A stretch of DNA of 64,000 nucleotides from Macrostomum hystrix. Lineage: Eukaryota; Animalia; Platyhelminthes. The stretch is from positions 3,720,001-3,784,000 of the forward strand of contig CATNEN010000005.1 in the NCBI GenBank assembly GCA_950097015.1, given 5' to 3'. The notes under the pieces were generated by a model, which searched no databases, was not told the origin of the DNA, and saw only the letters and a program-made list of their open reading frames with translations. The translations under genes and the position numbers were made by a program. Below, piece after piece: positions 2,140-46,245 of the stretch (positions are counted from its first letter, which is position 1; the number at the start of each line of letters is the position of its first letter).

Positions 2140-5100
2140 TGAGTAGCTACTCTTTAGTGTAGAGCAGCTAAATATATGAAGGAAGAGTAGCTACTGATTA
2201 TCGATTGAGTAGCTACTGATTAGGGGTTGAGTAGCTACTGATTAGAGGTTGAGTAGCTACTGATTATGGGTTGAAAAGCTACTGATTAGGGCTGAGTAGC
2301 TACTGATTAGGGGTTGAGTAGCTACTGATTAGGGGTTGAGTAGCTACTGATTAGGGGTTGAGTAGCCACTGATTAGGGGTTGAGTAGCTACTGATTAGGG
2401 GTTGAGTAGCTACTGATTAGGGGTTGAGTAGCCACTGATTAGGGGTTGAGTAGCCACTGATTAGGGGTTGAGTAGCTACTGATTAGGGGTTGAGTAGCTA
2501 CTAATTAGGGGTTGAGTAGCTACTGATTAGGGGTTGAGTAGCCACTGATTAGGGGTTGAGTAGCCACTGATTAGGGGTTGAGTAGCTACTGATTAGGGGT
2601 TGAGTAGCTACTGATTAGGGGTTGAGTAGCTACTGATTAGGGGTTGAGTAGCTACTGATTAGGGGTTGAGTAGCCACTGATTAGGGGTTGAGTAGCTACT
2701 GATTAGGGGTTGAGTAGCTACTGATTAGGGGTTGAGTAGCCACTGATTAGGGGTTGAGTAGCTACTGATTAGGGGTTGAGTAGCTACTGATTAGGGGTTG
2801 AGTAGCCACTGATTATGGGTTGAGTAGCCACTGATTAGGGGTTGAGTAGCTACTGATTAGGGGTTGAGTAGCTACTGATTAGGGGTTGAGTAGCCACTGA
2901 TTATGGGTTGAGTAGCTACTGATTAGGGGTTGAGTAGCTACTGATTAGGGGTTGAGTAGCTACTGATTAGGGGTTGAGTAGCCACTGATTAGGGGTTGAG
3001 TAGCCACTGATTAGGGGTTGAGTAGCCACTGATTAGGGGTTGAGTAGCCTCTGATTAGGGGTTGAGTAGCCACTGATTATGGATTGAGTAGCCACTGATT
3101 AGGGGTTGAGTAGCCACTGATTAGGGGTTGAGTAGCCACTGATTAGGAGTTGAGTAGCCACTGATTAGGGGTTGAGTAGCCACTGATTAGGGGTTGAGTA
3201 GCCACTGATTAGGGGTTAAGTAGCTACTGATTAGGGTTGAGTAGCTACTGATTATGGGTTGAGTAGCTACTGATTAGGGATTGAGTAGCTACTGATTAGG
3301 GGTTGAGTAGCTACTGATTAGGGGTTGAGTAGCTACTGATTATGGGTTGAGTAGCTACTGATTAGGGGTTGAGTAGCTACTGATTATGGGTTGAGTAGCT
3401 ACTGATTAGGGGTTGAGTAGCCACTGATTAGGAGTTGAGTAGCTAATGATTAAGGGTTGAGTAGCCACTGATTAGGGGTTAAGTAGCTACTGATTAGGGT
3501 TGAGTAGCTACTGATTAAGGGTTGAGTAGCCACTGATTAGGGGTTGAGTAGCCACTGATTAGGGGTTGAGTAGCTACTGATTATGGGTTGAGTAGCCACT
3601 GATTAGGGGTTGAGTAGCTACTGATTATGGGTTGAGTAGCTACTGATTAGGGATTGAGTAGCTACTGATTAGGGGTTGAGTAGCTACTGATTAGGGGTTG
3701 AGTAGCTACTGATTATGGGTTGAGTAGCTACTGATTAGGGGTTGAGTAGCTACTGATTAGGGATTGAGTAGCCACTGATTAGGGGTTGAGTAGCCACTGA
3801 TTAGGGGTTGAGTAGCCACTGATTAGGGGTTGAGTAGCCACTGATTAGGGGTTGAGTAGCTACTGATTAGGGGTTGAGTAGCCACTGATTAGGGGTTGAG
3901 TAGCCACTGATTATGGATTGAGTAGCCACTGATTAGGGGTTGAGTAGCCACTGATTAGGGGTTGAGTAGCTACTGATTAGGGGTTGAGTAGCCACTGATT
4001 AGGGGTTGAGTAGCCACTGATTAGGGGTTGAGTAGCCACTGATTAGGGGTTTAGTAGCCACTGATTAGGGGTTGAGTAGCTACTGATTATGGGTTGAGTA
4101 GCTACTGATTAGGGGTTGAGTAGCCACTGATTAGGGGTTGAGTAGCCACTGATTAGGGGTTGAGTAGCCACTGATTATGGATTGAGTAGCCACTGATTAG
4201 GGGTTGAGTAGCTACTGATTAGGGGTTGAGTAGCCACTGACTAGGGGTTGAGTAGCCACTGATTAGGGATTGAGTAGCCACTGATTAGGGATTGAGTAGC
4301 CACTGATTAGCGGTTGAGTAGCTACTGATTAGGGATGTAGTAGCCACTGATTAGGGGTTGAGTAGCCACTGATTAGGGGTTGAGTAGCCACTGATTAGGG
4401 ATTGAGTAGCAACTGATTAGGGATTGAGTAGCCACTGATTAGGGGTTGAGTAGCTACTGATTAGGGATTGAGTAGCCACTGATTAGGGGTTGAGTAGCCA
4501 CTGATTAGGGGTTGAGTAGCCACTGATTAGGGGTTGAGTAGCCACTGATTAGGGGTTAAGTAGCTACTGATTAGGGTTGAGTAGCTACTGATTAGGGGTT
4601 GAGTAGCTACTGATTAGGGGTTGAGTAGCTACTGATTATGGGTTGAGTAGCTACTGATTAGGGGTTGAGTAGCTACTGATTATGGGTTGAGTAGCCACTG
4701 ATTAGGGGTTGAGTAGCTACTGATTATGGGTTGAGTAGCTACTGATTAGGGGTTGAGTAGCTACTGATTATGGGTTGAGTAGCCACTGATTAGGGGTTGA
4801 GTAGCTACTGATTAGGGGTTGAGTAGCTACTGATTAGGGGTTGAGTAGCTACTGATTAGGGGTTGAGTAGCCACTGATTAGGGGTTGAGTAGCCACTGAT
4901 TAGGGATTGAGTAGCAACTGATTAGGGATTGAGTAGCCACTGATTAGGGGTTGAGTAGCTACTGATTAGGGATTGAGTAGCCACTGATTAGGGGTTGAGT
5001 AGCCACTGATTAGGGGTTGAGTAGCCACTGATTAGGGGTTGAGTAGCCACTGATTAGGGGTTAAGTAGCTACTGATTAGGGTTGAGTAGCTACTGATTAT

Positions 5101-6215
5101 GGGTTGAGTAGCTACTGATTAGGGATTGAGTAGCTACTGATTAGGGGTTGAGTAGCTACTGATTAGGGGTTGAGTAGCTACTGATTATGGGTTGAGTAGC
5201 TACTGATTAGGGGTTGAGTAGCTACTGATTATGGGTTGAGTAGCCACTGATTAGGGGTTGAGTAGCTACTGATTAGGGGTTGAGTAGCCACTGATTAGGA
5301 GTTGAGTAGCTAATGATTAAGGGTTGAGTAGCCACTGATTAGGGGTTGAGTAGCCACTGATTAGGGGTTGAGTAGCCACTGATTAGGGGTTGAGTAGCTA
5401 CTGATTAGGGGTTGAGTAGCTACTGATTAGGGGTTGAGTAGCCACTGATTAGCGGTTGAGTAGCTACTGATTAGGGGTTGGGTAGCTACTGATTAGGGGT
5501 TGAGTAGCTACTGATTAGGGGTTGAGTAGCCACTGATTAGGGGTTGAGTAGCCACTGATTATGGGTTGAGTAGCCACTGATTAGGGGTTGAGTAGCCACT
5601 GATTAGGGGTTGAGTAGCTACTGATTAGGGGTTGAGTAGCCACTGATTAGGGGTTGAGTAGCTACTGATTAGGGGTTCAGTAGCTAATGATTAGGAGTTG
5701 AGTAGCTACTGATTAGGGGTTGAGTAGCCACTGATTAGGGGTTGAGTAGCTACTGATTAGGGGTTGAGTAGCCACTGATTAGGGGTTGAGTAGCTACTGA
5801 TTAGGGGTTGAGTAGCCACTGATTAGGGGTTGAGTAGCTAATGATTAGGGGTTGAGTAGCTACTGATTAGGGGTTGAGTAGCTACTGATTAGGGGTTGAG
5901 TAGCCACTGATTAGGGGTTGAGTAGCCACTGATTAGGGGTTGAGTAGCCACTGATTAGGGGTTGAGTAGCTACTGATTAGGGATTGAGTAGCCACTGATT
6001 AGGGGTTGAGTAGCTACTGATTAGGGGTTCAGTAGCTAATGATTAGGGATTGAGTAGCCACTGATTAGGGGTTGAGTAGCCACTGATTAGGGGTTGAGTA
6101 GCTACTGATTATGGGTTGAGTAGCTACTGATTAGGGGTTGAGTAGCCACTGATTAAGGGTTGAGTAGCTACTGATTAGGGGTTGAAAAGCTACTGATTAG
6201 GGGTTGAAAAGCTAG
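2140..6215. repeat. 22-bp minisatellite GATTAGGGGTTGAGTAGCTACT (~185 copies)
   Basis: Near-perfect ~4-kb array; variants CTACT/CCACT and TAGGGG/TATGGG/TAGGGA. Confidence 0.97.
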
Positions 6216-6316
6216 TAATTATGGAAGAGTAGACACGCTAAAAGTATAAATTTAAGCTATTTAGCGATTACAACATTACGTTTCTCAGTAAAATCAATTG
6301 ACCAACCAATCAGTAA

Positions 6317-8324: not shown

Positions 8325-10091
8325 CTAAGACTCAAATAAAAAGCCGTATGGCCACAAAATAGAATTAATTTATAAAATCAATCGACAATTATCAAACAAC
8401 AAAACACCAACTCAGTCCTGTGAGCCTAAGACTAGACTAATGACCTATTAATCTTAAAAGTAAAAATTTATAATCAATGCGGAACTAAAATGTTAAAAAT
8501 GACACCAGTAATTATTTTTTGTAAACTGTTAAGACAAAAAAATTCTTAGTTAGCTTTTAACTGTTAAATGAAGAATCTAAAAATACTTTTTCTTAAAACT
8601 TAAGAAAAATATAAAATACTACGTTTACTGTGTTTTAATAAGGTGTTCCGTGTTTAAATATTCATGGGACGTAAACTAATAGTGCCTCTATTTATTGTTA
8701 TTGTTTCTCTTTACTAGAACTTTCCTAGCCTCTATTTCTAGAACCTTCTCCTGCGCGAATAAATAAACAAACCCTTCTCCTTCGTGGCCAAATGACTTAA
8801 CTTCTTCGTAATGCACTCACTGGGCTTGTTGCGAGGACTATGTAAAGTAGAGTCTTCTTTCTTACGTAGTCTTTGGATTGTAGACAATTATATCCGTGCC
8901 ATTGATCTTTTCCACAGCAGAACATTATGTTTACAAAACTTAACTTGTGAGCTTTGCCGTATCTCGTTAAAACAAAATTTTATATTGTTTTCTTACCACT
9001 GTGAATACGAAGTGGTAAGCTTTGAATATTCAAAGCACGCTTGAAATAAAGCACGCTTGAATCGCTCGGAATTCCGCTACAAAACTACTTATTTAGAACT
9101 TGTCCACTGGTAGACCAAGCGTCAAAGACGTTTGACTATATGACGTTGGACAAGATATTGGACAAATCACATATATTTATCAAGTTAAAATGTTTATTTT
9201 CGTTGGGATTTTCTAGGAGCGAGGAATGAAGTTGCAATAATTTATTTGCAGGTATGGAATCTGTCACCGTCTGGTCCGTAAGGATTGTAGATCAATCAAC
9301 GATTGAAGGACTATATGGAATCTAGTGAGTCGGTACTTTAAAACTCATGCAAGACTGATCCTAGATATTGCACCAGGATCGGTATAATGACTCCATCAGG
9401 AGCAACGACTACCAGAGCCGCGTTTACTACCGAGCTCATCTGAAGCGCTATAGTTTGTGCTACCTTTATATGTAACAATAATTTGACACATTCACAAAGC
9501 AGAGGGCCATGCGAGCATACGACGAAATTTAATTTGTATCCGTGACCTCACCAAGACATGCTTGTTCTATAATCGTTGCTTTTAGAGAAACCAGCTGTAC
9601 AAATCCGAATGCGTATTGAACTTATCCGATACTCTAAATATTTTCAAAAATCGCTACTCAACTCGCTTTTGGCTCGATCAAAACACTGAGTGTGATGTCT
9701 CATGCAGGCATTCAGATTTTATAACTAAGTGTTCTTTTTGACTCTGCAGAGCACTAGGGTAGAAATTATTGTGGGGAAATCATTGGGGAAACATGGCGAA
9801 GTGTAAGATATTCCTTGCGATCTACCATTATTGTAATGTTTCTGCAACAGACTCATCTCATTCTTTGAAGGAAAAATCAACGAAGTCGTCACCAGCAAGA
9901 AAATCTGAGGATCAGTTCGATGCATGTCGATTCACTAAACCGCTGCTGTTTCAGTCGAATGCGTTCAGAAAAAAGCAAGGGCCATAAATACACCAAAACA
10001 CAGGCTTCCAGTGGAGAAAAGTCTTTTCTGGGCTTTAAACCCGCTGATGAAGCGGTTTTTAGCAATTAAGAACTGCCAATCAATCTCAAAT

Positions 10092-10870
10092 ATGAAAGCA
10101 CTCCATCGCGTTCTTGTGGGTTTCGCTATCCTTGTTGCCATCAGTGTCGGCAAGGCAGTTCTTGGCCGTCAGTTCACAATCAGCTCGAGCCTCGGCTGCT
10201 TTAACGACAATCTGAATGGCATCAGGGACATGAATGGTTCGAAGGACTATGGATTCTATCGAGTCGGCACGGTTTTTGTCACGCAAATCGTACCACAGAT
10301 CAGCAGCGGCCGCATGACGCACGAGCTGTGCAGCACCGTCTGCTCCCAGGGTGGCTTCCGGTACATGGGGCTGCAGAGCTGGAGCCACTGCTTCTGCAGC
10401 AACACCTATGGCTCACTGGGATCTGTTGCTAGCTGGCGTTGCTTTGCGGCTTGCTCGGGAAACCCCGCGCAAATCTGCGGCTATGACTACCTGAACAGCG
10501 TCTTCGAGCTCATCTACAAGGCTGGTCGGTGCTGTCCGAGCGTAGAGCACTTTTCAATGAAATATTTTCCATAGCGAACATGATCAGTTGAGTCACAATG
10601 AGCAGACACCGCCACCCGATTTCAGAGAATCGCAACAGATTCGTGCCCGGAGATCGCAACCTGATCGGCATCAGCAAGCCGGATGCGCCGGCCTACCTGA
10701 CCTTGTGGACGCGCAGTCTGATGCAGTGCGTGAGTCGCTGTCTGATTGGCTGCGAGGCTGTGATTTTCTTCCAGGAGACTGGCATGTGCCACCTGCTGGA
10801 GTACGCTGCCGTGCCTGCTGTGCTCAGCAGTAACGGCACCGTCAGCGGCAAGTACTTCGAAAGAGCCTGA
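10092..10870 (+). CDS. Secreted WSC-domain + PAN/Apple-like protein, copy 1 (exons 10092-10524 and 10626-10870, ~225 aa)
   Basis: Signal peptide MKALHRVLVGFAILVAISVG. WSC signature LGCF...MT..LC...C...GFRYMGLQ...CFCSN......C...CSGN...ICG....NSVF. Phase-1 intron G|GTCGGT...ttcAG. C-terminal SLMQCVSRCLIGCEAVIF...GMCHLL cysteine pattern is Apple-like. Confidence 0.8.
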
Positions 10871-11566
10871 GTTCGAAACATTAGACCGATGGTGAAAGTA
10901 TCTTTAAGCGTGACATTCTGAAAATATCATAGGGTTAAAATCGTAAAAATACAACGATTGACCGCTTTCAAGTCGTTTTTGGCAGAAAACTTGATTGCAT
11001 CAAAATGTTTCGTTAAGGTTGACCGGAAATTAAACTTGATAAGGTTATGTACTCGCGTACTAACGCGATTTCGAATCAGCGAGTCCTTAAAATGACTTTA
11101 CTTGTTTTAATCGATTAAATTTAACGTTTGCCGACAGCGTTTACTAATTCGAACAAATAACGAACCCTTCTGATCGTACGAGTATATCTTGGAACTATGC
11201 CACGGGATACCCAACTCAACTCGTGGTTTTGTCGACCGTCCCTCTCAGTATGAGTGTGATACCTCAAGTATTAAAATTATATATAAGTGCTATTGCTCAT
11301 GACTCGGGGCACCAAAATAGGAATTGCCTTGTGGGACATAAACGAAGCACTGAAGAGACAGAAAATTTTCAGATCAATCCAATGCATGTTGGATCACTAA
11401 ACCGCTGCCGTTACACTTAAGCGCGCTTTGAAAACAATGCGCCAAGGTCCAAAAATACATGCTACATAAAACACACGCATGTAAAGATGAAAAGCTTTTT
11501 CTGAGTTTTTCAAATATGCTGATGAAGCGGTTTTTAGCAATTAAGAACTGCCAATCAATCTCAAAT

Positions 11567-12341
11567 ATGAAAGCACTCCGTCGGGTTCTAGTGGGTTTCG
11601 CAATCCTTGTTGCCATGAGTGTCGGCAAAGCAGTTCTTGGCCGTCAGTTCGCAATCAACTAGAGCCTCGGCTGTTTCACTAATTCGAATGGCATCAGGGA
11701 CATAAGTGGTCTGAAAATCTATGGAATCTATCGAGTCGGCACGTTTTACGCCACAGAATTGAATCACAGATCTTCAGCGGCCGCATGACGTACGAACTGT
11801 GCAGCACCGTCTGCTCCCAGGGTGGCTTCCGGTACATGGGACTGCAGAGCTGGAACCACTGCTTCTGTAGCAATACCTATGGCTCACTGGGATCTGTTGC
11901 TAGCTGGCGTTGCTTTGCGACTTGCTCGGGAAACTCCGCACAAATCTGCGGCTATGACTACCTGAACAGCGTCTTCGAGCTCATCTACAAGGCTGGTCGG
12001 TGCTGTCCGAGCGTAGAGCACTTTTCAATGAAATATTTTCCATAGCGAACATGATCAGTTGAGTCACAATGAGCAGACACCGCCACCCAATTTCAGAGAA
12101 ACGCAACAGATTCGTGCCCGGAGATCGCAACCTGATCGGCATCAGCAAGCCGGATGCGCCGGCCTACCTGACCTTGTGGACGCGCAGTCTGATGCAGTGC
12201 GTGAGCCGCTGTCTGATTGGCTGCGAGGCTGTGATTTTCTTCCAGGAGACTGGCCTGTGCCACCTGCTGGAGTACGCTGCCGTGCCTGCTGTGCTCAGCA
12301 GTAACGGCACCGTCAGCGGCAAGTACTTCGAAAGAGCCTGA
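11567..12341 (+). pseudogene. WSC + PAN-like tandem duplicate, copy 2, disrupted
   Basis: Same signal peptide, intron and exon 2 as copy 1. TCG>TAG stop at 11660-11662, a 3-bp deletion, and a 1-bp deletion near 11762 causing a frameshift. The single-base loss could be a sequencing error. Confidence 0.75.
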
Positions 12342-13459
12342 GTTCGATATATTTTTTTAAATGAGTTCGTCGCGTATTCACTGTAGAAAAAAGAACGATA
12401 ACTAAGCTGCAAACTAAAACGCAACGAATCGCTTTTCTCGTGTTAATTTTATCTAGAATATTTAGAGTGTGTTTCACAGCTCTACCTGGACAGTGAGCCG
12501 AATAACCTAATACGAGTATATAAATTTGCTTATCCAGCTAATTTTGAGGTGATAGTCAGTAGTAATTGTAAGGAAATTATAACAAAAGTATATTTTATAC
12601 ATCATTACAAGTTAAGGAAATTTGTTTAAATATTATGTACACAAGTAGCGAGCGCAGAATGAAATAACAGCTGAACGAAATTTTACTGACAATTTGGAGA
12701 CTCGATTGCCAGCTGGGGATTAAGCACTGATTAATCGAGTAGTAGGGCTGCATGAGAATAGGCGTTGTAGCTGTATAGAGTTCAGTGTGGTTAAGCGGAA
12801 TTGGCATGCTACTGAATTATACTTAAATAGTATTCGAGATAGGGACAATTTAATAATGAATTTATGAAAGATAGTTTTAAGAATAATGATTTAACTTAAA
12901 AGCGAAATAGTTTTTTACTTCTGGCATAAGAACATTGTGCTTTAACATACAAACTGAAAAAATACAGTTTACAATCATAGAAGCATGGTGAGAGGCAAAA
13001 AGTGGTCTTTATCCTTTGATGTAGTTATTTTTAGAGGTAGTCAATTTCCGGTTTCCAGCTTTGATCCTACTAATTAATGTTAATATCGTTCTAACACAAG
13101 TACTTTCAGTGCGTGCAATACTTCTTAATATAAACAATTATACTAATAATAACAACGATTTTAGCAAAATGTAACTATGAAAATAACAATAGAAAATACT
13201 GCAAAACAGGAGAGCGTAGTTTAAGGACCAAATCAGCTGAGTACTTTGAGTTGCTGCAGCCGCTAATGGACTCAGCGATGGCGTAAGCCGAAGAAATTCT
13301 CTGCAATTGAAAATGATTAGCTCATTGCGAACTGAGTCCAACTGTTTCTAAGGAGCCTGGGGACCAATGCGTTACAGCACTTTATATTTTTACTTTCTAC
13401 TTTTGAACCAATATGGATTCGCCATTAAGGTTTATACTGAGCAATATAAGTTGTCCTTG

Positions 13460-34400: not shown

Positions 34401-37400
34401 TAGCGAACCCTGCGATGAGCAATTCGTGGCAAATATTAGTTAAATTATTAAAAATATTTCTCGTAATTCCACACGCGCCGACACATGGCTTATTCCACGC
34501 ACCACCCCTTTCCTCTCACCCGACACCTCGCTTATCGCACCCACCACCCCATTCCTCACACAGACACCTCGCTTATCGCACCAACCACCCCATTCCTCTC
34601 ACCCGACACATCGCTTATCGCACCCCATTCCTCACACGCGACACCTCGCTTATCGCACCCATTCCTCACACCCGACACCTCGCTTATCGCACTCACCACC
34701 CCATTCCTCACACAGACACCTCGCTTATCGCACCCATTCCTCACACCCGACACCTCGCTTCTCCTACAAACCTTTTCTCATAGCCGATACACCAGTTGCC
34801 CTGACTGTGACAATTTGGTTTCCAAACTTTCACCAGCTTCACAAACGGTTTGGTCTCCTTCTCCTCGATTGGAATCATGTCCAATGCCTTGTAGGGGCAC
34901 ACGTTAGGCCTGAAAATGGTTTAATCGGTTTTTAGATTCTCTAACTAGCAAAACTCAAGGTCAATTCGAGGTCAGGATTGTTAGCCATTAACTTCTACCC
35001 TAAAGAACCATGCTCAATTAGGCAGCACGTTGCTCAAACCTAGGTCTAACCCCACACTTGACTGTCTTGACTTTGCGGCTCATAAATAACTTTTTTAGCC
35101 TGATCGATGTTGGCTGACTCGACTAGCCTAGATAAAGGCATGCAATCTATTTTAGCAGACAGCTCTGAGTAGGAGTCAGATAGTACAGAATCTACATTCA
35201 ACTGACTGCTTTAGCTAATAGCTAAGCACACAAGGCAAAAAATAGCGTTAAAATTTTCAATGAGTAACACTCTGCAGTGATTATTGACTAAACGTTTGAA
35301 ATGTAACTCTGCCTTTCAGAGAGTCCTGCGAATGCAGAGAGTGACTAAAAATTGACTACAATACAGTGACGATATGAAAGTGACTACCAGAGAGTGACTA
35401 TTAGAGAGTGACTATTAGAGAGACTATCAGAGAGTGACTATCAGAGAGACTATCAGAGAGTGACTATCAGAGAGTGACTATCAGAGAGTGACTATCAGAG
35501 AGTGACTATCAGAGAGTGACTATCAGAGAGACTATCAGAGAGTGACTATTAGAGAGTGACTATTAGAGAGTGACTATCAGAGAGACTATCAGAGAGTGAC
35601 TATCAGAGAGTGACTATCAGAGAGTGACTATCAGAGAGACTATCAGAGAGTGACTATTAGAGAGTGACTATTAGAGAGTGACTATTAGAGAGACTATCAA
35701 AGAGTGACTATCAGAGAGTGACTATCAGAGAGTGACTATCAGAGAGTGACTATCAGAGAGACTATCAGAGAGTGACTATTAGAGAGACTATCAAAGAGTG
35801 ACTATCAAAGAGTGACTATCAGAGAGTGACTATAAGAGAGTGACTATAAGAGAGTGACTATCAGAGAGTGACTATCAGAGAGTGACTATCAGAGAGACTA
35901 TCAGAGAGTGACTATCAGAGAGTGACTATCAGAGCGTTACTATCAGAGAGTGACTATCAGAGAGTGACTATCAGAGAGACTATCAGAGAGTGACTATCAG
36001 AGAGTGACTATCAGAGCGTTACTATCAGAGAGTGACTATCAGAGAGTGACTATCAGAGAGTGACTATCAGAGAGTGACTATCAGAGAGTGACTATCAGAG
36101 AGACTATCAGAGAGTGACTATCAGAGAGTGACTATCAGTGAGTGACTATCAGAGATTGACTATCAGAGAGTGACTATCAGAGCGTTACTATCAGAGCGTT
36201 ACTATCAGAGAGTGACTATCAGAGAGTGACTATCAGAGAGTGACTATCAGAGAGTGACTATCAGAGAGTGACTATCAGAGAGTGACTATCAGAGAGTGAC
36301 TATCAGAGAGTGACTATCAGAGAGACTATCAGAGAGTGACTATCAGAGAGTGACTATCAGAGAGTGACTATCAGAGAGACTATCAGAGAGTGACTATCAG
36401 AGAGTGACTATTAGAGAGTGACTATTAGAGAGACTATCAGAGAGTGACTATCAGAGAGACTATCAGAGAGTGACTATCAGAGAGTGACTATCAGAGAGTG
36501 ACTATCAGAGAGTGACTATCAGAGAGTGACTATCAGAGAGACTATCAGAGAGTGACTATTAGAGAGTGACTATTAGAGAGTGACTATCAGAGAGACTATC
36601 AGAGAGTGACTATCAGAGAGTGACTATCAGAGAGTGACTATCAGAGAGACTATCAGAGAGTGACTATTAGAGAGTGACTATTAGAGAGTGACTATTAGAG
36701 AGACTATCAAAGAGTGACTATCAGAGAGTGACTATCAGAGAGTGACTATCAGAGAGTGACTATCAGAGAGACTATCAGAGAGTGACTATTAGAGAGACTA
36801 TCAAAGAGTGACTATCAAAGAGTGACTATCAGAGAGTGACTATAAGAGAGTGACTATAAGAGAGTGACTATCAGAGAGTGACTATCAGAGAGTGACTATC
36901 AGAGAGACTATCAGAGAGTGACTATCAGAGAGTGACTATCAGAGCGTTACTATCAGAGAGTGACTATCAGAGAGTGACTATCAGAGAGACTATCAGAGAG
37001 TGACTATCAGAGAGTGACTATCAGAGCGTTACTATCAGAGAGTGACTATCAGAGAGTGACTATCAGAGAGTGACTATCAGAGAGTGACTATCAGAGAGTG
37101 ACTATCAGAGAGACTATCAGAGAGTGACTATCAGAGAGTGACTATCAGTGAGTGACTATCAGAGATTGACTATCAGAGAGTGACTATCAGAGCGTTACTA
37201 TCAGAGCGTTACTATCAGAGAGTGACTATCAGAGAGTGACTATCAGAGAGTGACTATCAGAGAGTGACTATCAGAGAGTGACTATCAGAGAGTGACTATC
37301 AGAGAGTGACTATCAGAGAGTGACTATCAGAGAGACTATCAGAGAGTGACTATCAGAGAGTGACTATCAGAGAGTGACTATCAGAGAGACTATCAGAGAG

Positions 37401-40247
37401 TGACTATCAGAGAGTGACTATCAGAGAGTGACTATCAGAGAGACTATCAGAGAGTGACTATCAGAGAGTGACTATCAGTGAGTGACTATCAGAGATTGAC
37501 TATCAGAAAGTGACTATCAGAGAGTGACTATCAGAGAGTGACTATCAGAGAGTGACTATCAGAGAGACTATCAGAGAGTGACTATCAGAGAGTGACTATC
37601 AGAGAGTGACTATCAGAGAGTGACTATCAGAGAGTGACTATCAGAGAGTGACTATCAGAGAGTGACTATCAGAGAGACTATCAGAGAGTGACTATCAGAG
37701 AGTGACTATCAGAGAGTGACTATCAGAGAGACTATCAGAGAGTGACTATCAGAGAGTGACTATCAGTGAGTGACTATCAGAGATTGACTATCAGAGAGTG
37801 ACTATCAGAGCGTTACTATCAGAGCGTTACTATCAGAGAGTGACTATCAGAGAGTGACTATCAGAGAGTGACTATCAGAGAGTGACTATCAGAGAGTGAC
37901 TATCAGAGAGTGACTATCAGAGAGTGACTATCAGAAAGTGACTATCAGAGAGACTATCAGAGAGTGACTATCAGAGAGTGACTATCAGAGAGTGACTATC
38001 AGAGAGACTATCAGAGAGTGACTATTAGAGAGTGACTATCAGAGAGTGACTATCAGAGAGACTATCAGAGAGACTATCAGAGAGTGACTATCAGAGAGTG
38101 ACTATCAGAGAGACTATCAGAGAGTGACTATCAGAGAGTGACTATCAGAGAGTGACTATCAGAGAGTGACTATCAGAGAGTGACTATCAGAGAGTGACTA
38201 TCAGAGTGACTATCAGAGAGTGACTATTAGAGAGTGACTATTAGAGAGACTATCAGAGAGTGACTATCAGAGAGACTATCAGAGAGTGACTATCAGAGAG
38301 TGACTATTAGAGAGACTATCAGAGAGTGACTATCAGAGAGACTATCAGAGAGTGACTATCAGAGAGTGACTATCAGAGAGACTATCAGAGAGTGACTATC
38401 AGAGAGTGACTATCAGAGAGTGACTATCAGAGAGTGACTATCAGAGAGTGACTATCAGAGAGTGACTATCAGAGAGTGACTATCAGAGAGAGACTATCAA
38501 AGAGTGACTCTCAGAGAGTGACTATCAGAGTGACTCTCAAAGAGTGACTATCAGAGAGTGACTATAAGAGAGTGACAATATATATAATTTTGTGACTACA
38601 AAAGTGACGCTGAGGGAGTACCTACATCAGCATTATCAGCAACAGAGCAAGGTGTAAAGTTACAGATAAAGTAGATTTGAGACATGGACTTGACTACGAT
38701 CGTGATGCAATAAAGTATCAACTTATTTTATTGACTAAACCTGCACACACGTACCAACTCACGCAACTCACAAGATGAGAGATAGTGAAGCAACATTTCT
38801 TCATCAAATATCTGGTCATCTAACAAGTTGAGAACGGCTATAAAAAATATTTCGCCCCATCGAACCATCGCACAACTGTTCTGGCATTCAATATCGTCCT
38901 ACTCGCCTACTAGAGCATGCAGTCAACTTTAGTGTGATTTCCCCTGGGAGAATTTCAGTCTATCGCATCCTCACGCGAGTTCATTTCCAACTTACAAAAT
39001 AGCTCCTAGTTCTGCCGCAAACTGTGCAATTATTCTCGATTTTCTCATTTCTGCCATCAAACAGACAGGAATTTGGGAGTGGCATGCCGACATTGTAGTG
39101 TGGGACAGTATAGATCTCCGGTTTCAAGTAGGGAAATTTCTGCCCAGACTTTCTTTGACAGATAATTCTCATTTGAATATCTGCCGGAATGCTTAAAGTA
39201 CTTTTTCAAGTATGCTTCATTCCTGTTGATTATTAGCGTTGCAGTGCCAATCAGCCTTGTCAATCTGCAAATCTACCTGTTTATCATTCCATCTGCCTGT
39301 CTATCTGCCAATCTACCTGTCTATCTGCCAATCTACCGGTCTATCTGCCAATCTACCTGTCTATCTGCCAATCTACCTGTCTATCTGCCAATTTACCTGT
39401 CTATCTGCCAATTCACCTGTCTATCTACCAATTTACCTGTCTATCTGCCAATCTACCGGTCTATCTGACGATTTAGCTGTCTATCTAACAATTTACCTGT
39501 CTATCTGCCGATTTACCTATCTATCTGCCAATCTACCGGTCTATCTGACGATTTAGCTGTCTATCTAACAATTTACCTGTCTATCTGCCAATCTACCGGT
39601 CTATCTGACGATTCAGCTGTCTATCTACCAATTTACTTGTCTATCTACCAATTTACCTGTCTATCTGCCAATCTACCGGTCTATCTGCCGATTTACCTAT
39701 CTATCTGCCAATTTACCTGTCTATCTGCCAATCTACCGGTCTATCTGACGATTCAGCTGTCTATCTGCCAATCTACCGGTCTATCTGCCGATTTACCTGT
39801 CTATCTGCCAATCTACCTGTCTATCTGCCAATCTACCGGTCTATCTGACGATTTAGCTGTCTATCTACCAATTTACCTGTCTATCTACCAATTTACCTGT
39901 CTATCTGCCAATCTACCGGTCTATCTGCCGATTTACCTATCTATCTGCCAATCTACCGGTCTATCTGCCAATCTAGATGTATTCTACCAATATACCAGTG
40001 TAACTTCCTATCTATCAGTATATATATTCGGCTACTTGCTTGTAGATTATTTTATCAAATAATTATCGTGTCCATTGCACTGTGGTCCGATCTACCACTG
40101 CTGTCAGGTTTTTCATCGGTATAACAAAAAAATGAAAACAGCGACTCACATGCCATCCTTAAGCCCAGCTGAGACTAGCGCGCAGCAACAAAGGCAGGCT
40201 GTTAGAAATGCCAGGAGTCTAGTCCTCAACGCGAAACCGGTATCCAT
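13460..40247 (-). CDS. MEGF6: Multiple EGF-like domains protein 6 orthologue (signal peptide, EMI domain, EGF/cbEGF repeats, long laminin-type EGF run), ~1580 aa
   Basis: Phase-consistent exons: 40247-40150 ([33 protein letters not shown]), 34909-34772 (PNVCPY...[19 protein letters not shown]), 34409-34300 ([14 protein letters not shown]), 29669-29532, 28499-28374, 27621-27496, 26842-26717, 25556-25428 (GRGPCDH), 25117-24977 ([10 protein letters not shown]), 24285-24022, 22681-22616 (tentative linker), 21656-21514 ([17 protein letters not shown]), 21224-20699, 20193-20065, 19419-19291, 18926-18786, 18349-18221, 17643-16732, 16405-15425, 13907-13773, 13521-13460 (tentative last exon). The EMI, RIE.E and CDC..GWTG.ICN.TCP motifs match MEGF6 as I recall it; no TM segment was found. 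Confidence 0.88.
14222..15300. repeat. 16-bp two-variant minisatellite (CCCGTGTCTCATCTCT / CCAGCGTCGCATCCCT) in a MEGF6 intron
   Basis: ~67 units. A 16-nt period with no stop codon explains the three overlapping + strand ORFs. Confidence 0.95.
16555..16712 (-). mobile_element. SINE family A fragment
   Basis: Reverse complement contains GGCGAGGCCACA...GGGCCAACC..CAAGGCACAGTGA.AGTGTACACTGCCTGACGAT.AGAAAGTC, shared with the 55596 copy. Confidence 0.7.
17700..17845 (+). mobile_element. CORE-type SINE (family B) 5' fragment
   Basis: tRNA-like head CTAGTG.TTAGAGCGTCGGACTCACGA..TCAAGGTCGGGGTTC, then GTGTC..TTAGCA.GACACTTAACT.TGCATTGCTTCAGCTCACCCAGCT. Confidence 0.7.
17847..18148. repeat. 34-bp minisatellite GAACTACACCTGTGGTCTACACCTGTGGACCTGT (~9 copies)
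   Basis: Perfect units starting at 17881, 17915 and onward. Confidence 0.95.
18972..19197 (-). mobile_element. SINE family A copy
   Basis: Reverse complement begins GTGGCAGAG...AACGCGTTTGCCTCTCGCACC...CTCGATTCCGCGGCGAGGCCACATT and includes GTGCTCAGGAGTCAGCGGAATGG...AATTGCCTCCTCGCTG. Confidence 0.8.
20345..20520 (-). mobile_element. SINE family A copy (internally deleted)
   Basis: Reverse complement: GCAGAGCAGTTAACGCGTTTGCCTCCTCTCGC...CTGCCTGACGACGAGAAAGTC...GGAGTCAACGGAAAGGGCAGAATTGCCTCCTCG. Confidence 0.75.
22948..23564. mobile_element. Inverted-repeat-bounded non-autonomous DNA element in a MEGF6 intron
   Basis: TACCAAGGGGGGAATTCTCCCCCTGACAATTTTTT (22964-) pairs with AAAAAATTGTCAGGGGGGGGAATCCCCCCCCCTTGGTA (-23520). 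An outer arm GGATTAGCAGTAGAACTACCAAG also pairs imperfectly with 23542-23564. True ends and TSD are ambiguous (TA if the inner ends are used). Confidence 0.65.
23783..23945. repeat. 45-bp tandem repeat (~3.5 copies)
   Basis: CAGTGTACATTGAGGGAGAGGAAAG at 23791, 23836 and 23881. Confidence 0.85.
24485..24965. repeat. GATA-derived 16-bp repeat (GATAGTCTGATAGATT) degenerating to (GATA)n
   Basis: Direct reading; begins right after the MEGF6 donor at 24976. Confidence 0.9.
25590..25738 (-). mobile_element. SINE family A copy (head fused to 3' part)
   Basis: Reverse complement: TTTGCCTCTCGCACCAAGGTCAGGGCAATGTACACAC...GTGCTCAGGAGTCAGCGGAATGGGCAGAAT...GTGCCCGCAGCCCTCC. Confidence 0.8.
27795..28270. 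repeat. Degenerate ~20-bp G-rich repeat GGAGTGAGGTGGCTGCTAGT
   Basis: About 22 imperfect units. Confidence 0.85.
28715..29240. repeat. CT-rich low-complexity tract containing a 28-bp repeat
   Basis: TCTCTTCTCTCTTCTATCCTCTCATTTT-type units at ~28930-29130. Confidence 0.85.
29765..29875 (-). mobile_element. CORE-type SINE (family B) 5' fragment
   Basis: Reverse complement: GCCAAGTGGTTAGAGCGTCGGACTCACGACTTGAAGGTCGAGGGTTCGATTTCC...GCAATTTGTGTCCTCTAGCAAAAG. A second head remnant lies at ~29720-29760. Confidence 0.75.
29885..31597. repeat. 1.7-kb polypyrimidine (CTCCTCTCTCCA-type) tract
   Basis: Almost purely C/T with sparse A; internally duplicated blocks (CCCCACTCCTTTCACTCTACT recurs). Confidence 0.95.
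32350..32510 (+). mobile_element. Possible decayed non-LTR retrotransposon RNase H remnant
   Basis: Translates to ...KIYTDGSV preceded, in another frame, by PLW. IYTDGS is the RNase H start motif of several LINE clades. Contains stops and a frameshift; only a short motif supports the call. Confidence 0.3.
32548..33230. repeat. 15-bp minisatellite CAGTAGATTCGGAAA grading into ATAGACGATTCGGAA
   Basis: Direct reading. Confidence 0.92.
33950..34210. repeat. 22-bp repeat GATCATGGAGTGACAAACTATG
   Basis: About 12 imperfect units. Confidence 0.88.
34500..34762. repeat. 34-42-bp repeat CACCTCGCTTATCGCACCC...ATTCCTCAC filling MEGF6 intron 2
   Basis: About 7 units, starting ~10 nt inside the donor. 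Confidence 0.85.
35385..38580. repeat. 14-bp minisatellite GACTATCAGAGAGT (12-bp deletion variant interspersed), ~230 units
   Basis: Direct reading; higher-order duplication with a ~1010-bp offset. Confidence 0.97.
39270..39975. repeat. 20-bp minisatellite CTATCTGCCAATCTACCTGT
   Basis: About 35 units. Confidence 0.93.
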
Positions 40248-42671: not shown

Positions 42672-45600
42672 CAAGATTGTTGAAATGTCAGTGAGAGAGT
42701 CAGATAAGATTGTTGAAATGTCAGTGAGAGAGTCAGATAAGATTGTTGAAATGTCAGTGAGAGAGTCAGATAAGATTGTTGAAATGTCAGTGAGAGAGTC
42801 AGATAAGATTGTTGAAATGTCAGTGAGAGAGTCAGATAAGATTGTTGAAATGTCAGTGAGAGAGTCAGATAAGATTGTTGAAATGTCAGTGAGAGAGTCA
42901 GATAAGATTGTTGATCAGACAGTGAGAGAGTCAGATAAGATTGTTGATCAGACAGTGAGAGAGTCAGATAAGATTGTTGAAATGTCAGTGAGAGAGTCAG
43001 ATAAGATTGTTGATCAGAGAGTGAGAGAGTCAGATAAGATTGTTGATCAGACAGTGAGAGAGTCAGATAAGATTGTTGATCAGACAGTGAGAGAGTCAGA
43101 TAAGATTGTTGAAATGTCAGTGAGAGAGTCAGATAAGATTGTTGAAATGTCAGTGAGAGAGTCAGATAAGATTGTTGAAATGTCAGTGAGAGAGTCAGAT
43201 AAGATTGTTGAAATGTCAGTGAGAGAGTCAGATAAGATTGTTGAAATGTCAGTGAGAGAGTCAGATAAGATTGTTGAAATGTCAGTGAGAGAGTCAGATA
43301 AGATTGTTGATCAGACAGTGAGAGAGTCAGATAAGATTGTTGATCAGACAGTGAGAGAGTCAGATAAGATTGTTGAAATGTCAGTGAGAGAGTCAGATAA
43401 GATTGTTGAAATGTCAGTGAGAGAGTCAGATAAGATTGTTGAAATGTCAGTGAGAGAGTCAGATAAGATTGTTGAAATGTCAGTGAGAGAGTCAGATAAG
43501 ATTGTTGATCAGACAGTGAGAGAGTCAGATAAGATTGTTGATCAGACAGTGAGAGAGTCAGATAAGATTGTTGAAATGTCAGTGAGAGAGTCAGATAAGA
43601 TTGTTGATCAGAGAGTGAGAGAGTCAGATAAGATTGTTGATCAGACAGTGAGAGAGTCAGATAAGATTGTTGATCAGACAGTGAGAGAGTCAGATAAGAT
43701 TGTTGAAATGTCAGTGAGAGAGTCAGATAAGATTGTTGAAATGTCAGTGAGAGAGTCAGATAAGATTGTTGAAATGTCAGTGAGAGAGTCAGATAAGATT
43801 GTTGATCAGACAGTGAGAGAGTCAGATAAGATTGTTGATCAGACAGTGAGAGAGTCAGATAAGATTGTTGAAATGTCAGTGAGAGAGTCAGATAAGATTG
43901 TTGATCAGACAGTGAGAGAGTCAGATAAGATTGTTGATCAGACAGTGAGAGAGTCAGATAAGATTGTTGAAATGTCAGTGAGAGAGTCAGATAAGATTGT
44001 TGAAATGTCAGTGAGAGAGTCAGATAAGATTGTTGAAATGTCAGTGAGAGAGTCAGATAAGATTGTTGATCAGACAGTGAGAGAGTCAGATAAGATTGTT
44101 GAAATGTCAGTGAGAGAGTCAGATAAGATTGTTGAAATGTCAGTGAGAGAGTCAGATAAGATTGTTGAAATGTCAGTGAGAGAGTCAGATAAGATTGTTG
44201 ATCAGACAGTGAGAGAGTCAGATAAGATTGTTGATCAGACAGTGAGAGAGTCAGATAAGATTGTTGAAATGTCAGTGAGAGAGTCAGATAAGATTGTTGA
44301 TCAGACAGTGAGAGAGTCAGATAAGATTGTTGAAATGTCAGTGAGAGAGTCAGATAAGATTGTTGAAATGTCAGTGAGAGAGTCAGATAAGATTGTTGAA
44401 ATGTCAGTGAGAGAGTCAGATAAGATTGTTGATCAGAGAGTGAGAGAGTCAGATAAGATTGTTGATCAGACAGTGAGAGAGTCAGATAAGATTGTTGAAA
44501 TGTCAGTGAGAGAGTCAGATTAGATTGTTGAAATGTCAGTGAGAGAGTCAGATAAGATTGTTGAAATGTCAGTGAGAGAGTCAGATAAGATTGTTGAAAT
44601 GTCAGTGAGAGAGTCAGATAAGATTGTTGAAATGTCAGTGAGAGAGTCAGATAAGATTGTTGAAATGTCAGTGAGAGAGTCAGATAAGATTGTTGAAATG
44701 TCAGTGAGAGAGTCAGATAAGATTGTTGAAATGTCAGTGAGAGAGTCAGATAAGATTTTTGAAATGTCAGTGAGAGAGTCAGATAAGATTGTTGAAATGT
44801 CAGTGAGAGAGTCAGATAAGATTGTTGATCAGAGAGTGAGAGAGTCAGATAAGATTGTTGATCAGAGAGTGAGAGAGTCAGATAAGATTTTTGAAATGTC
44901 AGTGAGAGAGTCAGATAAGATTGTTGATCAGAGAGTGAGAGAGTCAGATAAGATTGTTGATCAGAGAGTGAGAGAGTCAGATAAGATTGTTGATCAGACA
45001 GTGAGAGAGTTAGATAAGATTGTTGATCAGACAGTGAGAGAGTTAGATAAGATTGTTGATCAGACAGTGAGAGAGTTAGATAAGATTGTTGATCAGACAG
45101 TGAGAGAGTCAGATAAGATTGTTGATCAGACAGTGAGAGAGTCAGATAAGATTGTTGATCAGAGAGTGAGAGAGTCAGATATGATTGTTGATCAGACAGT
45201 GAGAGAGTCAGATAAGATTGTTGATCAGAGAGTGAGAGAGTCAGATAAGATTGTTGATCAGACAGTGAGAGAGTCAGATAAGATTGTTGAAATGTCAGTG
45301 AGAGAGTCAGATAAGATTGTTGAAATGTCAGTGAGAGAGTCAGATAAGATTGTTGAAATGTCAGTGAGAGAGTCAGATAAGATTGTTGAAATGTCAGTGA
45401 GAGAGTCAGATAAGATTGTTGAAATGTCAGTGAGAGAGTCAGATAAGATTGTTGAAATGTCAGTGAGAGAGTCAGATAAGATTTTTGAAATGTCAGTGAG
45501 AGAGTCAGATAAGATTGTTGAAATGTCAGTGAGAGAGTCAGATAAGATTGTTGATCAGAGAGTGAGAGAGTCAGATAAGATTGTTGATCAGAGAGTGAGA

Positions 45601-46245
45601 GAGTCAGATAAGATTTTTGAAATGTCAGTGAGAGAGTCAGATAAGATTGTTGAAATGTCAGTGAGAGAGTCAGATAAGATTGTTGATCAGAGAGTGAGAG
45701 AGTCAGATAAGATTGTTGATCAGAGAGTGAGAGAGTCAGATAAGATTGTTGATCAGACAGTGAGAGAGTTAGATAAGATTGTTGATCAGACAGTGAGAGA
45801 GTTAGATAAGATTGTTGATCAGACAGTGAGAGAGTCAGATAAGATTGTTGAAATGTCAGTGAGAGAGTCAGATAAGATTGTTGATCAGAGAGTGAGAGAG
45901 TCAGATATGATTGTTGATCAGACAGTGAGAGAGTCAGATAAGATTGTTGATCAGAGAGTGAGAGAGTCAGATAAGATTGTTGATCAGACAGTGAGAGAGT
46001 CAGATAAGATTGTTGAAATGTCAGTGAGAGAGTCAGATAAGATTGTTGATCAGACAGTGAGAGAGTCAGATAAGATTGTTGATCAGACAGTGAGAGAGTC
46101 AGATAAGATTGTTGAAATGTCAGTGAGAGAGTCAGATAAGATTGTTGATCAGAGAGTGAGAGAGTCAGATAAGATTGTTGATCAGAGAGTGAGAGAGTCA
46201 GATAAGATTGTTGATCAGACAGTGAGAGAGTCAGATAAGATTTTG
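42672..46245. repeat. 33-bp minisatellite GTTGA(AATGTCA/TCAGACA)GTGAGAGAGTCAGATAAGATT (~108 units)
   Basis: Two main unit classes; explains the 1230-aa, 623-aa and 572-aa ORFs. Confidence 0.97.

Follow-up and report, generated by a model that had tools for sequence, protein, structure and literature searches.

A tandem pair of small two-exon genes, each with a WSC domain followed by a PAN-like module, was analyzed in a stretch of 64,000 nucleotides of the flatworm Macrostomum hystrix (contig CATNEN010000005.1, C5:3720001-3784000, hereafter the window, in a eukaryotic assembly of 220 Mb and 42 contigs). Copy 1 (10092-10870) is intact, whereas copy 2 (11567-12341), which has the same two-exon layout according to the alignment and three-frame translation, is a pseudogene; the two lie in tandem on the forward strand, 1.47 kb apart. 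Judging from the sequence comparison, the pair is probably the product of partial interlocus gene conversion involving a working WSC-PAN gene and the pseudogene beside it. The strongly divergent patch within the WSC domain, at 10168-10305 in copy 1 and 11643-11776 in copy 2, would then be the unconverted remnant. The original prediction had regarded this patch as a positively selected loop in otherwise homogenized duplicates.

Uneven divergence along the tandem pair

The two copies were aligned with MAFFT (9860-10900 versus 11330-12370), and the differences were counted per segment. The upstream flank of copy 1 (9898-10054), which is homologous to 11360-11529 and appears to be old, unconverted non-coding DNA, shows an aligned identity of 71%, with 53 of 184 positions differing (29%); a search of the worm's own genome gave 74% over 194 nt. 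It is followed by a leader of 50 nt without a single difference (10055-10104 versus 11530-11579), consisting of 37 nt of presumed 5' untranslated region and the first 13 coding nucleotides, the ATG of copy 1 being located at 10092. Six of the 76 nucleotides of the signal-peptide codons differ, and the patch has 28 mismatches and 4 gap columns over 138 columns (79% identity of copy 1 to copy 2). The homogenized tract (10306-10876) runs from the WSC core through the intron and exon 2 to 6 nt beyond the stop codon, with only 13 differences in 571 nt. The 3' WSC part (10306-10524) contributes 9 of 219, all of which are C>T or G>A when read from copy 1 towards copy 2, the intron 1 of 101 and exon 2 3 of 245. 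Thus, the counts originally given for the intron, exon 2, the 3' WSC part and the patch were all reproduced.

Two levels of divergence can be observed within the homogenized tract, namely 5.5% over 10306-10469 and 1% over 10470-10876. Maximum chi-square analysis with permutation placed breakpoints near 10043, 10199 and 10326 (p 0.0005-0.0035), and an internal break at 10470 was marginal (p = 0.06). The spread of the differences along the pair is far beyond chance. The homogenized tract may comprise two tracts of unlike age, and the graded identities (100% in the leader, 94.5% over 10306-10469 and 99% over 10470-10876) suggest several tracts of different age. The idea of a framework homogenized by gene conversion is therefore upheld for the 3' two-thirds of the gene but does not apply evenly on the 5' side, where a leader of 100% identity stands between signal codons differing at 6 of 76 nt (dS 0.23) and about 190 nt of upstream DNA that are 71-74% identical. 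Clear homogenization is confined to the stretch 3' of the patch. The leader itself could have been converted in a short tract of its own or be kept identical by constraint; the own-genome search found no DNA match to it in other paralogs, and its perfect conservation is still unexplained. It contains the sequence TTTTTAG, a possible splice or trans-splice acceptor.

At the 3' end, the homology stops 6-12 nt past the stop codon, where the identity falls from 99% to random, and no homology of the 3' flanks was found beyond 10882, the flanks being unrelated. This absence of a common 3' flank argues for non-reciprocal conversion, because an unequal crossover would have brought the flank along, and a hybrid gene formed in that way was ruled out for the same reason. 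Two marks of interlocus gene conversion were thus found in the pair: the mosaic is visible at silent and non-coding sites (intron 1% versus flank 29%), and the tract ends lie inside the homologous unit, with the flanks not co-transferred.

Copies 1 and 2 are the only near-identical copies in the 220 Mb assembly. The next paralogs share about 50% protein identity with them and give DNA matches only over conserved parts. When copy 1 and the copy 2 patch were used as queries in own-genome DNA searches, no third-party donor was found for either of them, the sole relative of the copy 2 patch being that of copy 1 (82%). Since neither patch has another near relative, import from a third paralog or from a cassette library is excluded for this assembly. 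The proposal that pseudogene copies donate variant cassettes called for several donors; the only near copy in the assembly is a single decayed pseudogene.

Selection on the patch and decay of copy 2

Synonymous (dS) and non-synonymous (dN) divergence and their ratio (omega) were obtained from Nei-Gojobori counts on the pair, with Fisher tests and averages per region; the broken codons of copy 2 were handled as gaps. The codon table of the patch contains 15 replacement codons, 4 purely synonymous ones, one TAG and two deletions. Over patch codons 26-72, there are 7.0 differences at 28.7 synonymous sites and 19.0 at 100.3 non-synonymous sites, corresponding to a dS of 0.295, a dN of 0.218 and an omega of 0.74 (Fisher p 0.60 versus neutrality); with the frameshift placed as in the original prediction, omega is 0.78 (p 0.46). 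That replacements seem so frequent (about 18 versus about 4 silent changes) follows from replacement sites outnumbering silent sites by about 3.5:1. The patch evolves at about the neutral rate, with an omega not different from 1 and no positive selection seen, and the claim of a positively selected patch with a dN/dS above 1 is not borne out.

The other regions were compared in the same way. The signal peptide has a dS of 0.228 and an omega of 0.16, the WSC core a dS of 0.117 and an omega of 0.21, and exon 2 a dS of 0.018. Pooled silent differences amount to 11 of 49 in the signal peptide and patch versus 6 of 102 in the WSC core and exon 2 (Fisher p = 0.005). At 0.30, the dS of the patch is higher than in the remainder of the gene by a factor of about 3.5 and near the divergence of the upstream non-coding DNA (71% identity), and the signal peptide is as old as the patch by its silent sites. 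As silent divergence is high in the patch, like that of the old flank, the patch is older, and not faster on a shared history.

Copy 2 consists of an exon 1-like part (11567-11995), an intron (11996-12096) and an exon 2-like part (12097-12341), delimited by alignment and three-frame translation. The codon table confirmed that its inactivating lesions lie within the patch, where all three are located: a TAG at 11660-11662 that arose by substitution, a 3-nt deletion after 11676, with loss of an Asp that is invariant in the family, and the loss of a single nucleotide between 11755 and 11765, outside any homopolymer run. No alternative start codon restoring a secreted copy 2 product was found in the three-frame translation. 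The confinement of the lesions to the patch may be explained because any lesions in the converted part would have been erased, or conversion would be too recent for new ones to have arisen.

The differing residues were polarized by setting each against 50 distinct paralogs. Within the patch, the residue typical of the family is found in copy 1 at seven sites, including Asp39 (50/50 paralogs), Phe37, Val63 and Gln65, and in copy 2 at one, Leu50 (47/50), where copy 1 has Ser; in seven of the eight polarizable changes, the dead copy 2 has thus lost a conserved residue. Compared with copy 1, copy 2 also has a raised AT content, both in the flank (GC fraction 0.40 versus 0.45) and in the patch (0.44 versus 0.49), and likewise in the converted part, where 10 of the 13 differences are GC>AT in copy 2. 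Such a bias fits a dead gene that drifts to an AT-rich background, not an adaptive cassette. The spectra elsewhere are mixed, with 19 transitions and 9 transversions in the patch and 2 transitions and 4 transversions in the signal region. RIP-like (repeat-induced point mutation) or CpG-driven mutation was considered for the nine transitions of the 3' WSC part and rejected after inspection of their contexts (3/9 CpA, 1 CpG, no strand coordination). A signature of GC-biased conversion was also rejected, as the GC content at third codon positions over the family does not differ between patch (0.69) and core (0.70).

The encoded protein and its family

Exon 1 of copy 1 (10092-10524) encodes a signal peptide (codons 1-25) and a WSC domain with eight cysteines (codons ~33-144), as read from its translation. 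The intron (10525-10625) has 101 nt, GT..AG borders and phase 1, and exon 2 (10626-10870) encodes a PAN/apple-like module with four cysteines and ends with a TGA at 10868-10870. The exons were searched and modelled each on its own. Exon 1 passes the Pfam cut-off for WSC (PF01822; 51.9 versus 27.8 bits, E 9e-14); residues 69-130 are aligned to profile positions 19-81, and the N-terminal residues up to 68 remain unaligned. The cysteines C36, C80, C84, C100, C102, C117, C121 and C129 are invariant or near-invariant among 45 paralogs. The AlphaFold (AF2) model of the WSC domain, built with the 45-paralog alignment, has a predicted local distance difference test score (pLDDT) of 87.8. Its best matches in the PDB, identified with Foldseek, are the Kremen WSC domain (E 5e-7, root mean square deviation 1.4-1.7 Å) and yeast Wsc1 (E 1e-5). 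Copy 1 thus shows both the eight-cysteine pattern and the WSC fold, as do Kremen1 (PDB 5FWS) and yeast Wsc1 (PDB 7PZ2). It differs from them in its long segment between the first cysteine and the helix, which spans 33-45 residues over the family, and in carrying the WSC domain alone with one PAN-like module.

Exon 2 stays under the cut-off of Pfam PAN_1 (PF00024; E 0.007, 16.6 versus 21.4 bits). Its four cysteines are invariant in 26 paralogs, its AF2 model has a pLDDT of 81.7, and the best PDB matches to this model are without exception PAN modules (HGF N domain, plasminogen and Sarcocystis SML-2; E ~0.01, TM score 0.45-0.58, probability 0.99-1.0). This evidence for a PAN/apple-like module, drawn from profile and model, is weak but consistent. 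The sequence therefore supports a secreted WSC + PAN-like protein with a predicted length of about 225 residues, in agreement with the original prediction as to the domains. WSC and PAN modules are established carbohydrate- or protein-binding domains.

The patch does not precede the WSC domain, as had been assumed; it forms the N-terminal third of it, from the first cysteine (Cys36) to the MTHELC helix, and is predicted to be folded in the AF2 model (pLDDT 87-93). It has two parts of different character. Codons 26-59 hold a conserved motif, GC-x2-D-x5-RD-x2-GL...G, with 8 of the 26 family columns that are invariant or nearly so, and codons 60-73 form a loop of 13-22 residues that is hypervariable across the family (family entropy 1.7 bits in codons 26-59 versus 2.9 bits in codons 60-73).

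An own-genome search with exon 1 returned 150 scored matches among 401 candidates, and the pair belongs to a very large, lineage-specific family of small secreted WSC + PAN-like genes. Selection across the family was assessed with 15 phylogenetically independent recent pairs, taken from 50 distinct exon-1 sequences and pooled by counts. The pooled omega is 0.49 for the signal, 0.40 for codons 26-59, 0.72 for codons 60-73 and 0.48 for the core, and none of these four regions exceeds 1 in the 15 pairs. The loop of codons 60-73 has the highest value, which is not different from 1, and looks relaxed rather than positively selected. A patch diversifying across the family had also been proposed, and the values found for it (0.40-0.72) lie below 1, a result that, according to the original prediction itself, would refute it. 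The sole public relative in a protein search was a WSC + PAN protein of Macrostomum lignano with 39% identity and a precomputed PF00024 hit; at this distance, it was of no use as an outgroup or as a source of alleles.

The family contains further mosaics. In the paralogs L039 (C1:21054848) and L043 (C1:20922654), which are 132 kb apart, a WSC core of ~220 nt is 96-100% identical with a break at codon 72, and the 5' exon part, intron and exon 2 outside it are only 60-85% identical; this is a second clean conversion tract. In the comparison of L003 with L040 or L027, the patch is the similar part (3.5% divergent versus 15-16% in the core, with breaks at codons 116-119), and L065 and L067 have the 5' part in common with a break at codon 56. 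Judging from these sequences, mosaics are common in the family, have both polarities and varied breakpoints, and are not tied to the patch. Conversion thus homogenizes patches too, which argues against a family-wide exclusion of conversion from this segment by selection. A fixed recombination hotspot at the boundary of patch and core was rejected, as one other pair breaks at codon 72 and others at codons 56 and 116-119.

Some additional observations were made. In two paralogs, L010 and L013 (C15:1333859 and C15:1236301), the Trp-x-Trp site conserved in the WSC core has an in-frame TAG, and pseudogenes are therefore scattered through the family. L046 (C1:27196555), L047 (C15:707261) and L048 (C15:1918925) have identical exon-1 sequences, and other matches on C1 and C15 score equally, which suggests that large segments were duplicated recently or that the assembly contains unplaced haplotype copies. 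The window itself is packed with long minisatellite arrays from 830 to 63386, for example at 2185-6221, 35379-38576 and 42673-46242. Their units are unrelated, with periods of 14-60 nt and up to 234 copies, and some have strong GC and AT skew.

Explanations for the mosaic

Partial conversion would account for the pair as follows. An old tandem duplication would have been followed by neutral divergence of about 0.3 substitutions per site, as seen in the flank, the silent sites of the signal peptide and the patch; copy 2 would be long dead, and copy 1 would have remained intact. Later, at least one non-reciprocal conversion would have overwritten the gene from codon ~73 to a point shortly after the stop codon, and probably the 50-nt leader as well, leaving these parts 95-100% identical. 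The patch would be the portion missed by the conversion tracts, its amino-acid differences being near-neutral and much of them decay of copy 2. The tract may have stopped at the patch edge since this least conserved, indel-bearing loop is likely to halt heteroduplex extension. Additionally, conversions that brought the stop codon or the frameshift of copy 2 into copy 1 may have been purged by purifying selection.

It is important to mention that several points weigh against this explanation. The near-invariant Leu50 was lost in copy 1, so that the change is not all pseudogene decay, and 11 of the 19 patch differences are ambiguous, the nearest outgroups being only about 50% identical. All ten differences over 10306-10625 (versus 11777-12096) are G:C>A:T in copy 2, with no strand coordination and mostly outside CpG and CpA, which is more one-sided than ordinary decay explains. 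The selection estimate for the pair is based on two sequences and 43 usable codons, which gives it little power; an average of ~0.75 could conceal a few positively selected sites. Moreover, two copies cannot give the direction or the number of conversion events, the lesions are known from the assembly letters alone, and copy 1 is known as a predicted gene.

The main alternative, which we consider unlikely, is a recognition loop under diversifying selection, where selection bars conversion and pseudogenes donate variant cassettes. Codons 60-73 are indeed the most variable part of the WSC domain in the family and vary in length (2.9 bits, 13-22 residues), their omega is the highest of all regions, segments are exchanged between family paralogs, and the Ser of copy 1 at Leu50 is a derived state. 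Against this stand an omega below 1 both in the pair (0.74-0.78) and in the 15 family pairs, silent sites that are raised in the patch as much as the replacement sites, and polarizable changes by which, for the most part, the dead copy has lost conserved residues. The only donor at hand would be a single near-copy pseudogene whose own patch is broken by a stop codon, a frameshift and the loss of an invariant Asp, and in L003 versus L040 and in L065/L067 the patch is the homogenized part.

The equal rise of silent and replacement sites would also be expected if the pair were young throughout and the patch, signal region and upstream flank had mutated faster locally, for instance by error-prone repair, with no conversion at all. 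We hold this to be very unlikely, as it requires at least three hot segments broken by 50 nt of perfect identity, no repeat or unusual sequence feature marking the patch was found, and the mosaics with other breakpoints and polarities in other pairs fit recombination better. That the mosaic or the lesions are an artefact of assembly, polishing or haplotype merging appears highly improbable: the risk of cross-polishing is high in near-identical tandem repeats, but the copies are 1.47 kb apart with unrelated 3' flanks, scattered single differences survive in the seemingly young part, the 1-nt deletion falls outside homopolymer runs, and the stop codon arose by substitution. Partial conversion thus remains the probable explanation, and we regard the pair as an ordinary, well-marked case of it and not as a selected diversity-generating system.

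Textbook cases of conversion between a gene and its tandem pseudogene are CYP21A2/CYP21A1P, GBA1/GBAP1, and PKD1 and its pseudogenes. The flatworm pair resembles them in the tandem arrangement of gene and pseudogene, the patchwork identity, the near-identical tracts that end inside the unit and the lesions found only in the unconverted part; it differs in that no transfer of a lesion into the working copy was seen. The likeness to the chicken immunoglobulin psi-V system is limited to the general idea of a neighbouring pseudogene as donor. That system has arrays of many donors with usable variable segments, whereas the flatworm pair has one donor, in which the variable segment is disrupted and conserved residues are missing from it.

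No paper describing the WSC-PAN family was found in the literature, apart from passing remarks on WSC domains in prostate or seminal-fluid candidates of M. lignano. These include several candidates for which WSC (WSCD2) homology is reported, among them Mlig-pro46, whose knock-down lowered sperm competitive ability (PMC6953679), and the candidate RNA815_80.4 with WSC homology (PMC4490696). They are similar to the present family in belonging to the same genus-level lineage, in being secreted and in containing WSC, and are likened by description, not by sequence; by this analogy, the link to seminal fluid may be taken as a lead, and an immune role in pattern recognition would be a candidate of equal standing.

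The pair carries a caution for similar cases: clustered amino-acid differences in near-identical duplicates mimic diversifying selection until they are normalized by site class and compared with silent and flanking divergence. We also think it possible, though unlikely, that short-tract conversion, recurring among hundreds of WSC-PAN paralogs, acts as segment shuffling, with the N-terminal WSC subdomain (motif and loop) as an exchangeable specificity module. If so, L003 versus L040, L039/L043 and the present pair would be its products, possibly in rapidly evolving secreted or seminal-fluid proteins. For now, the pair adds one more clean example of partial gene-pseudogene conversion and points to mosaicism as common in the Macrostomum WSC-PAN family. 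Of greater interest is what this family does, the candidate roles being glycan binding, adhesion and a part in seminal fluid.

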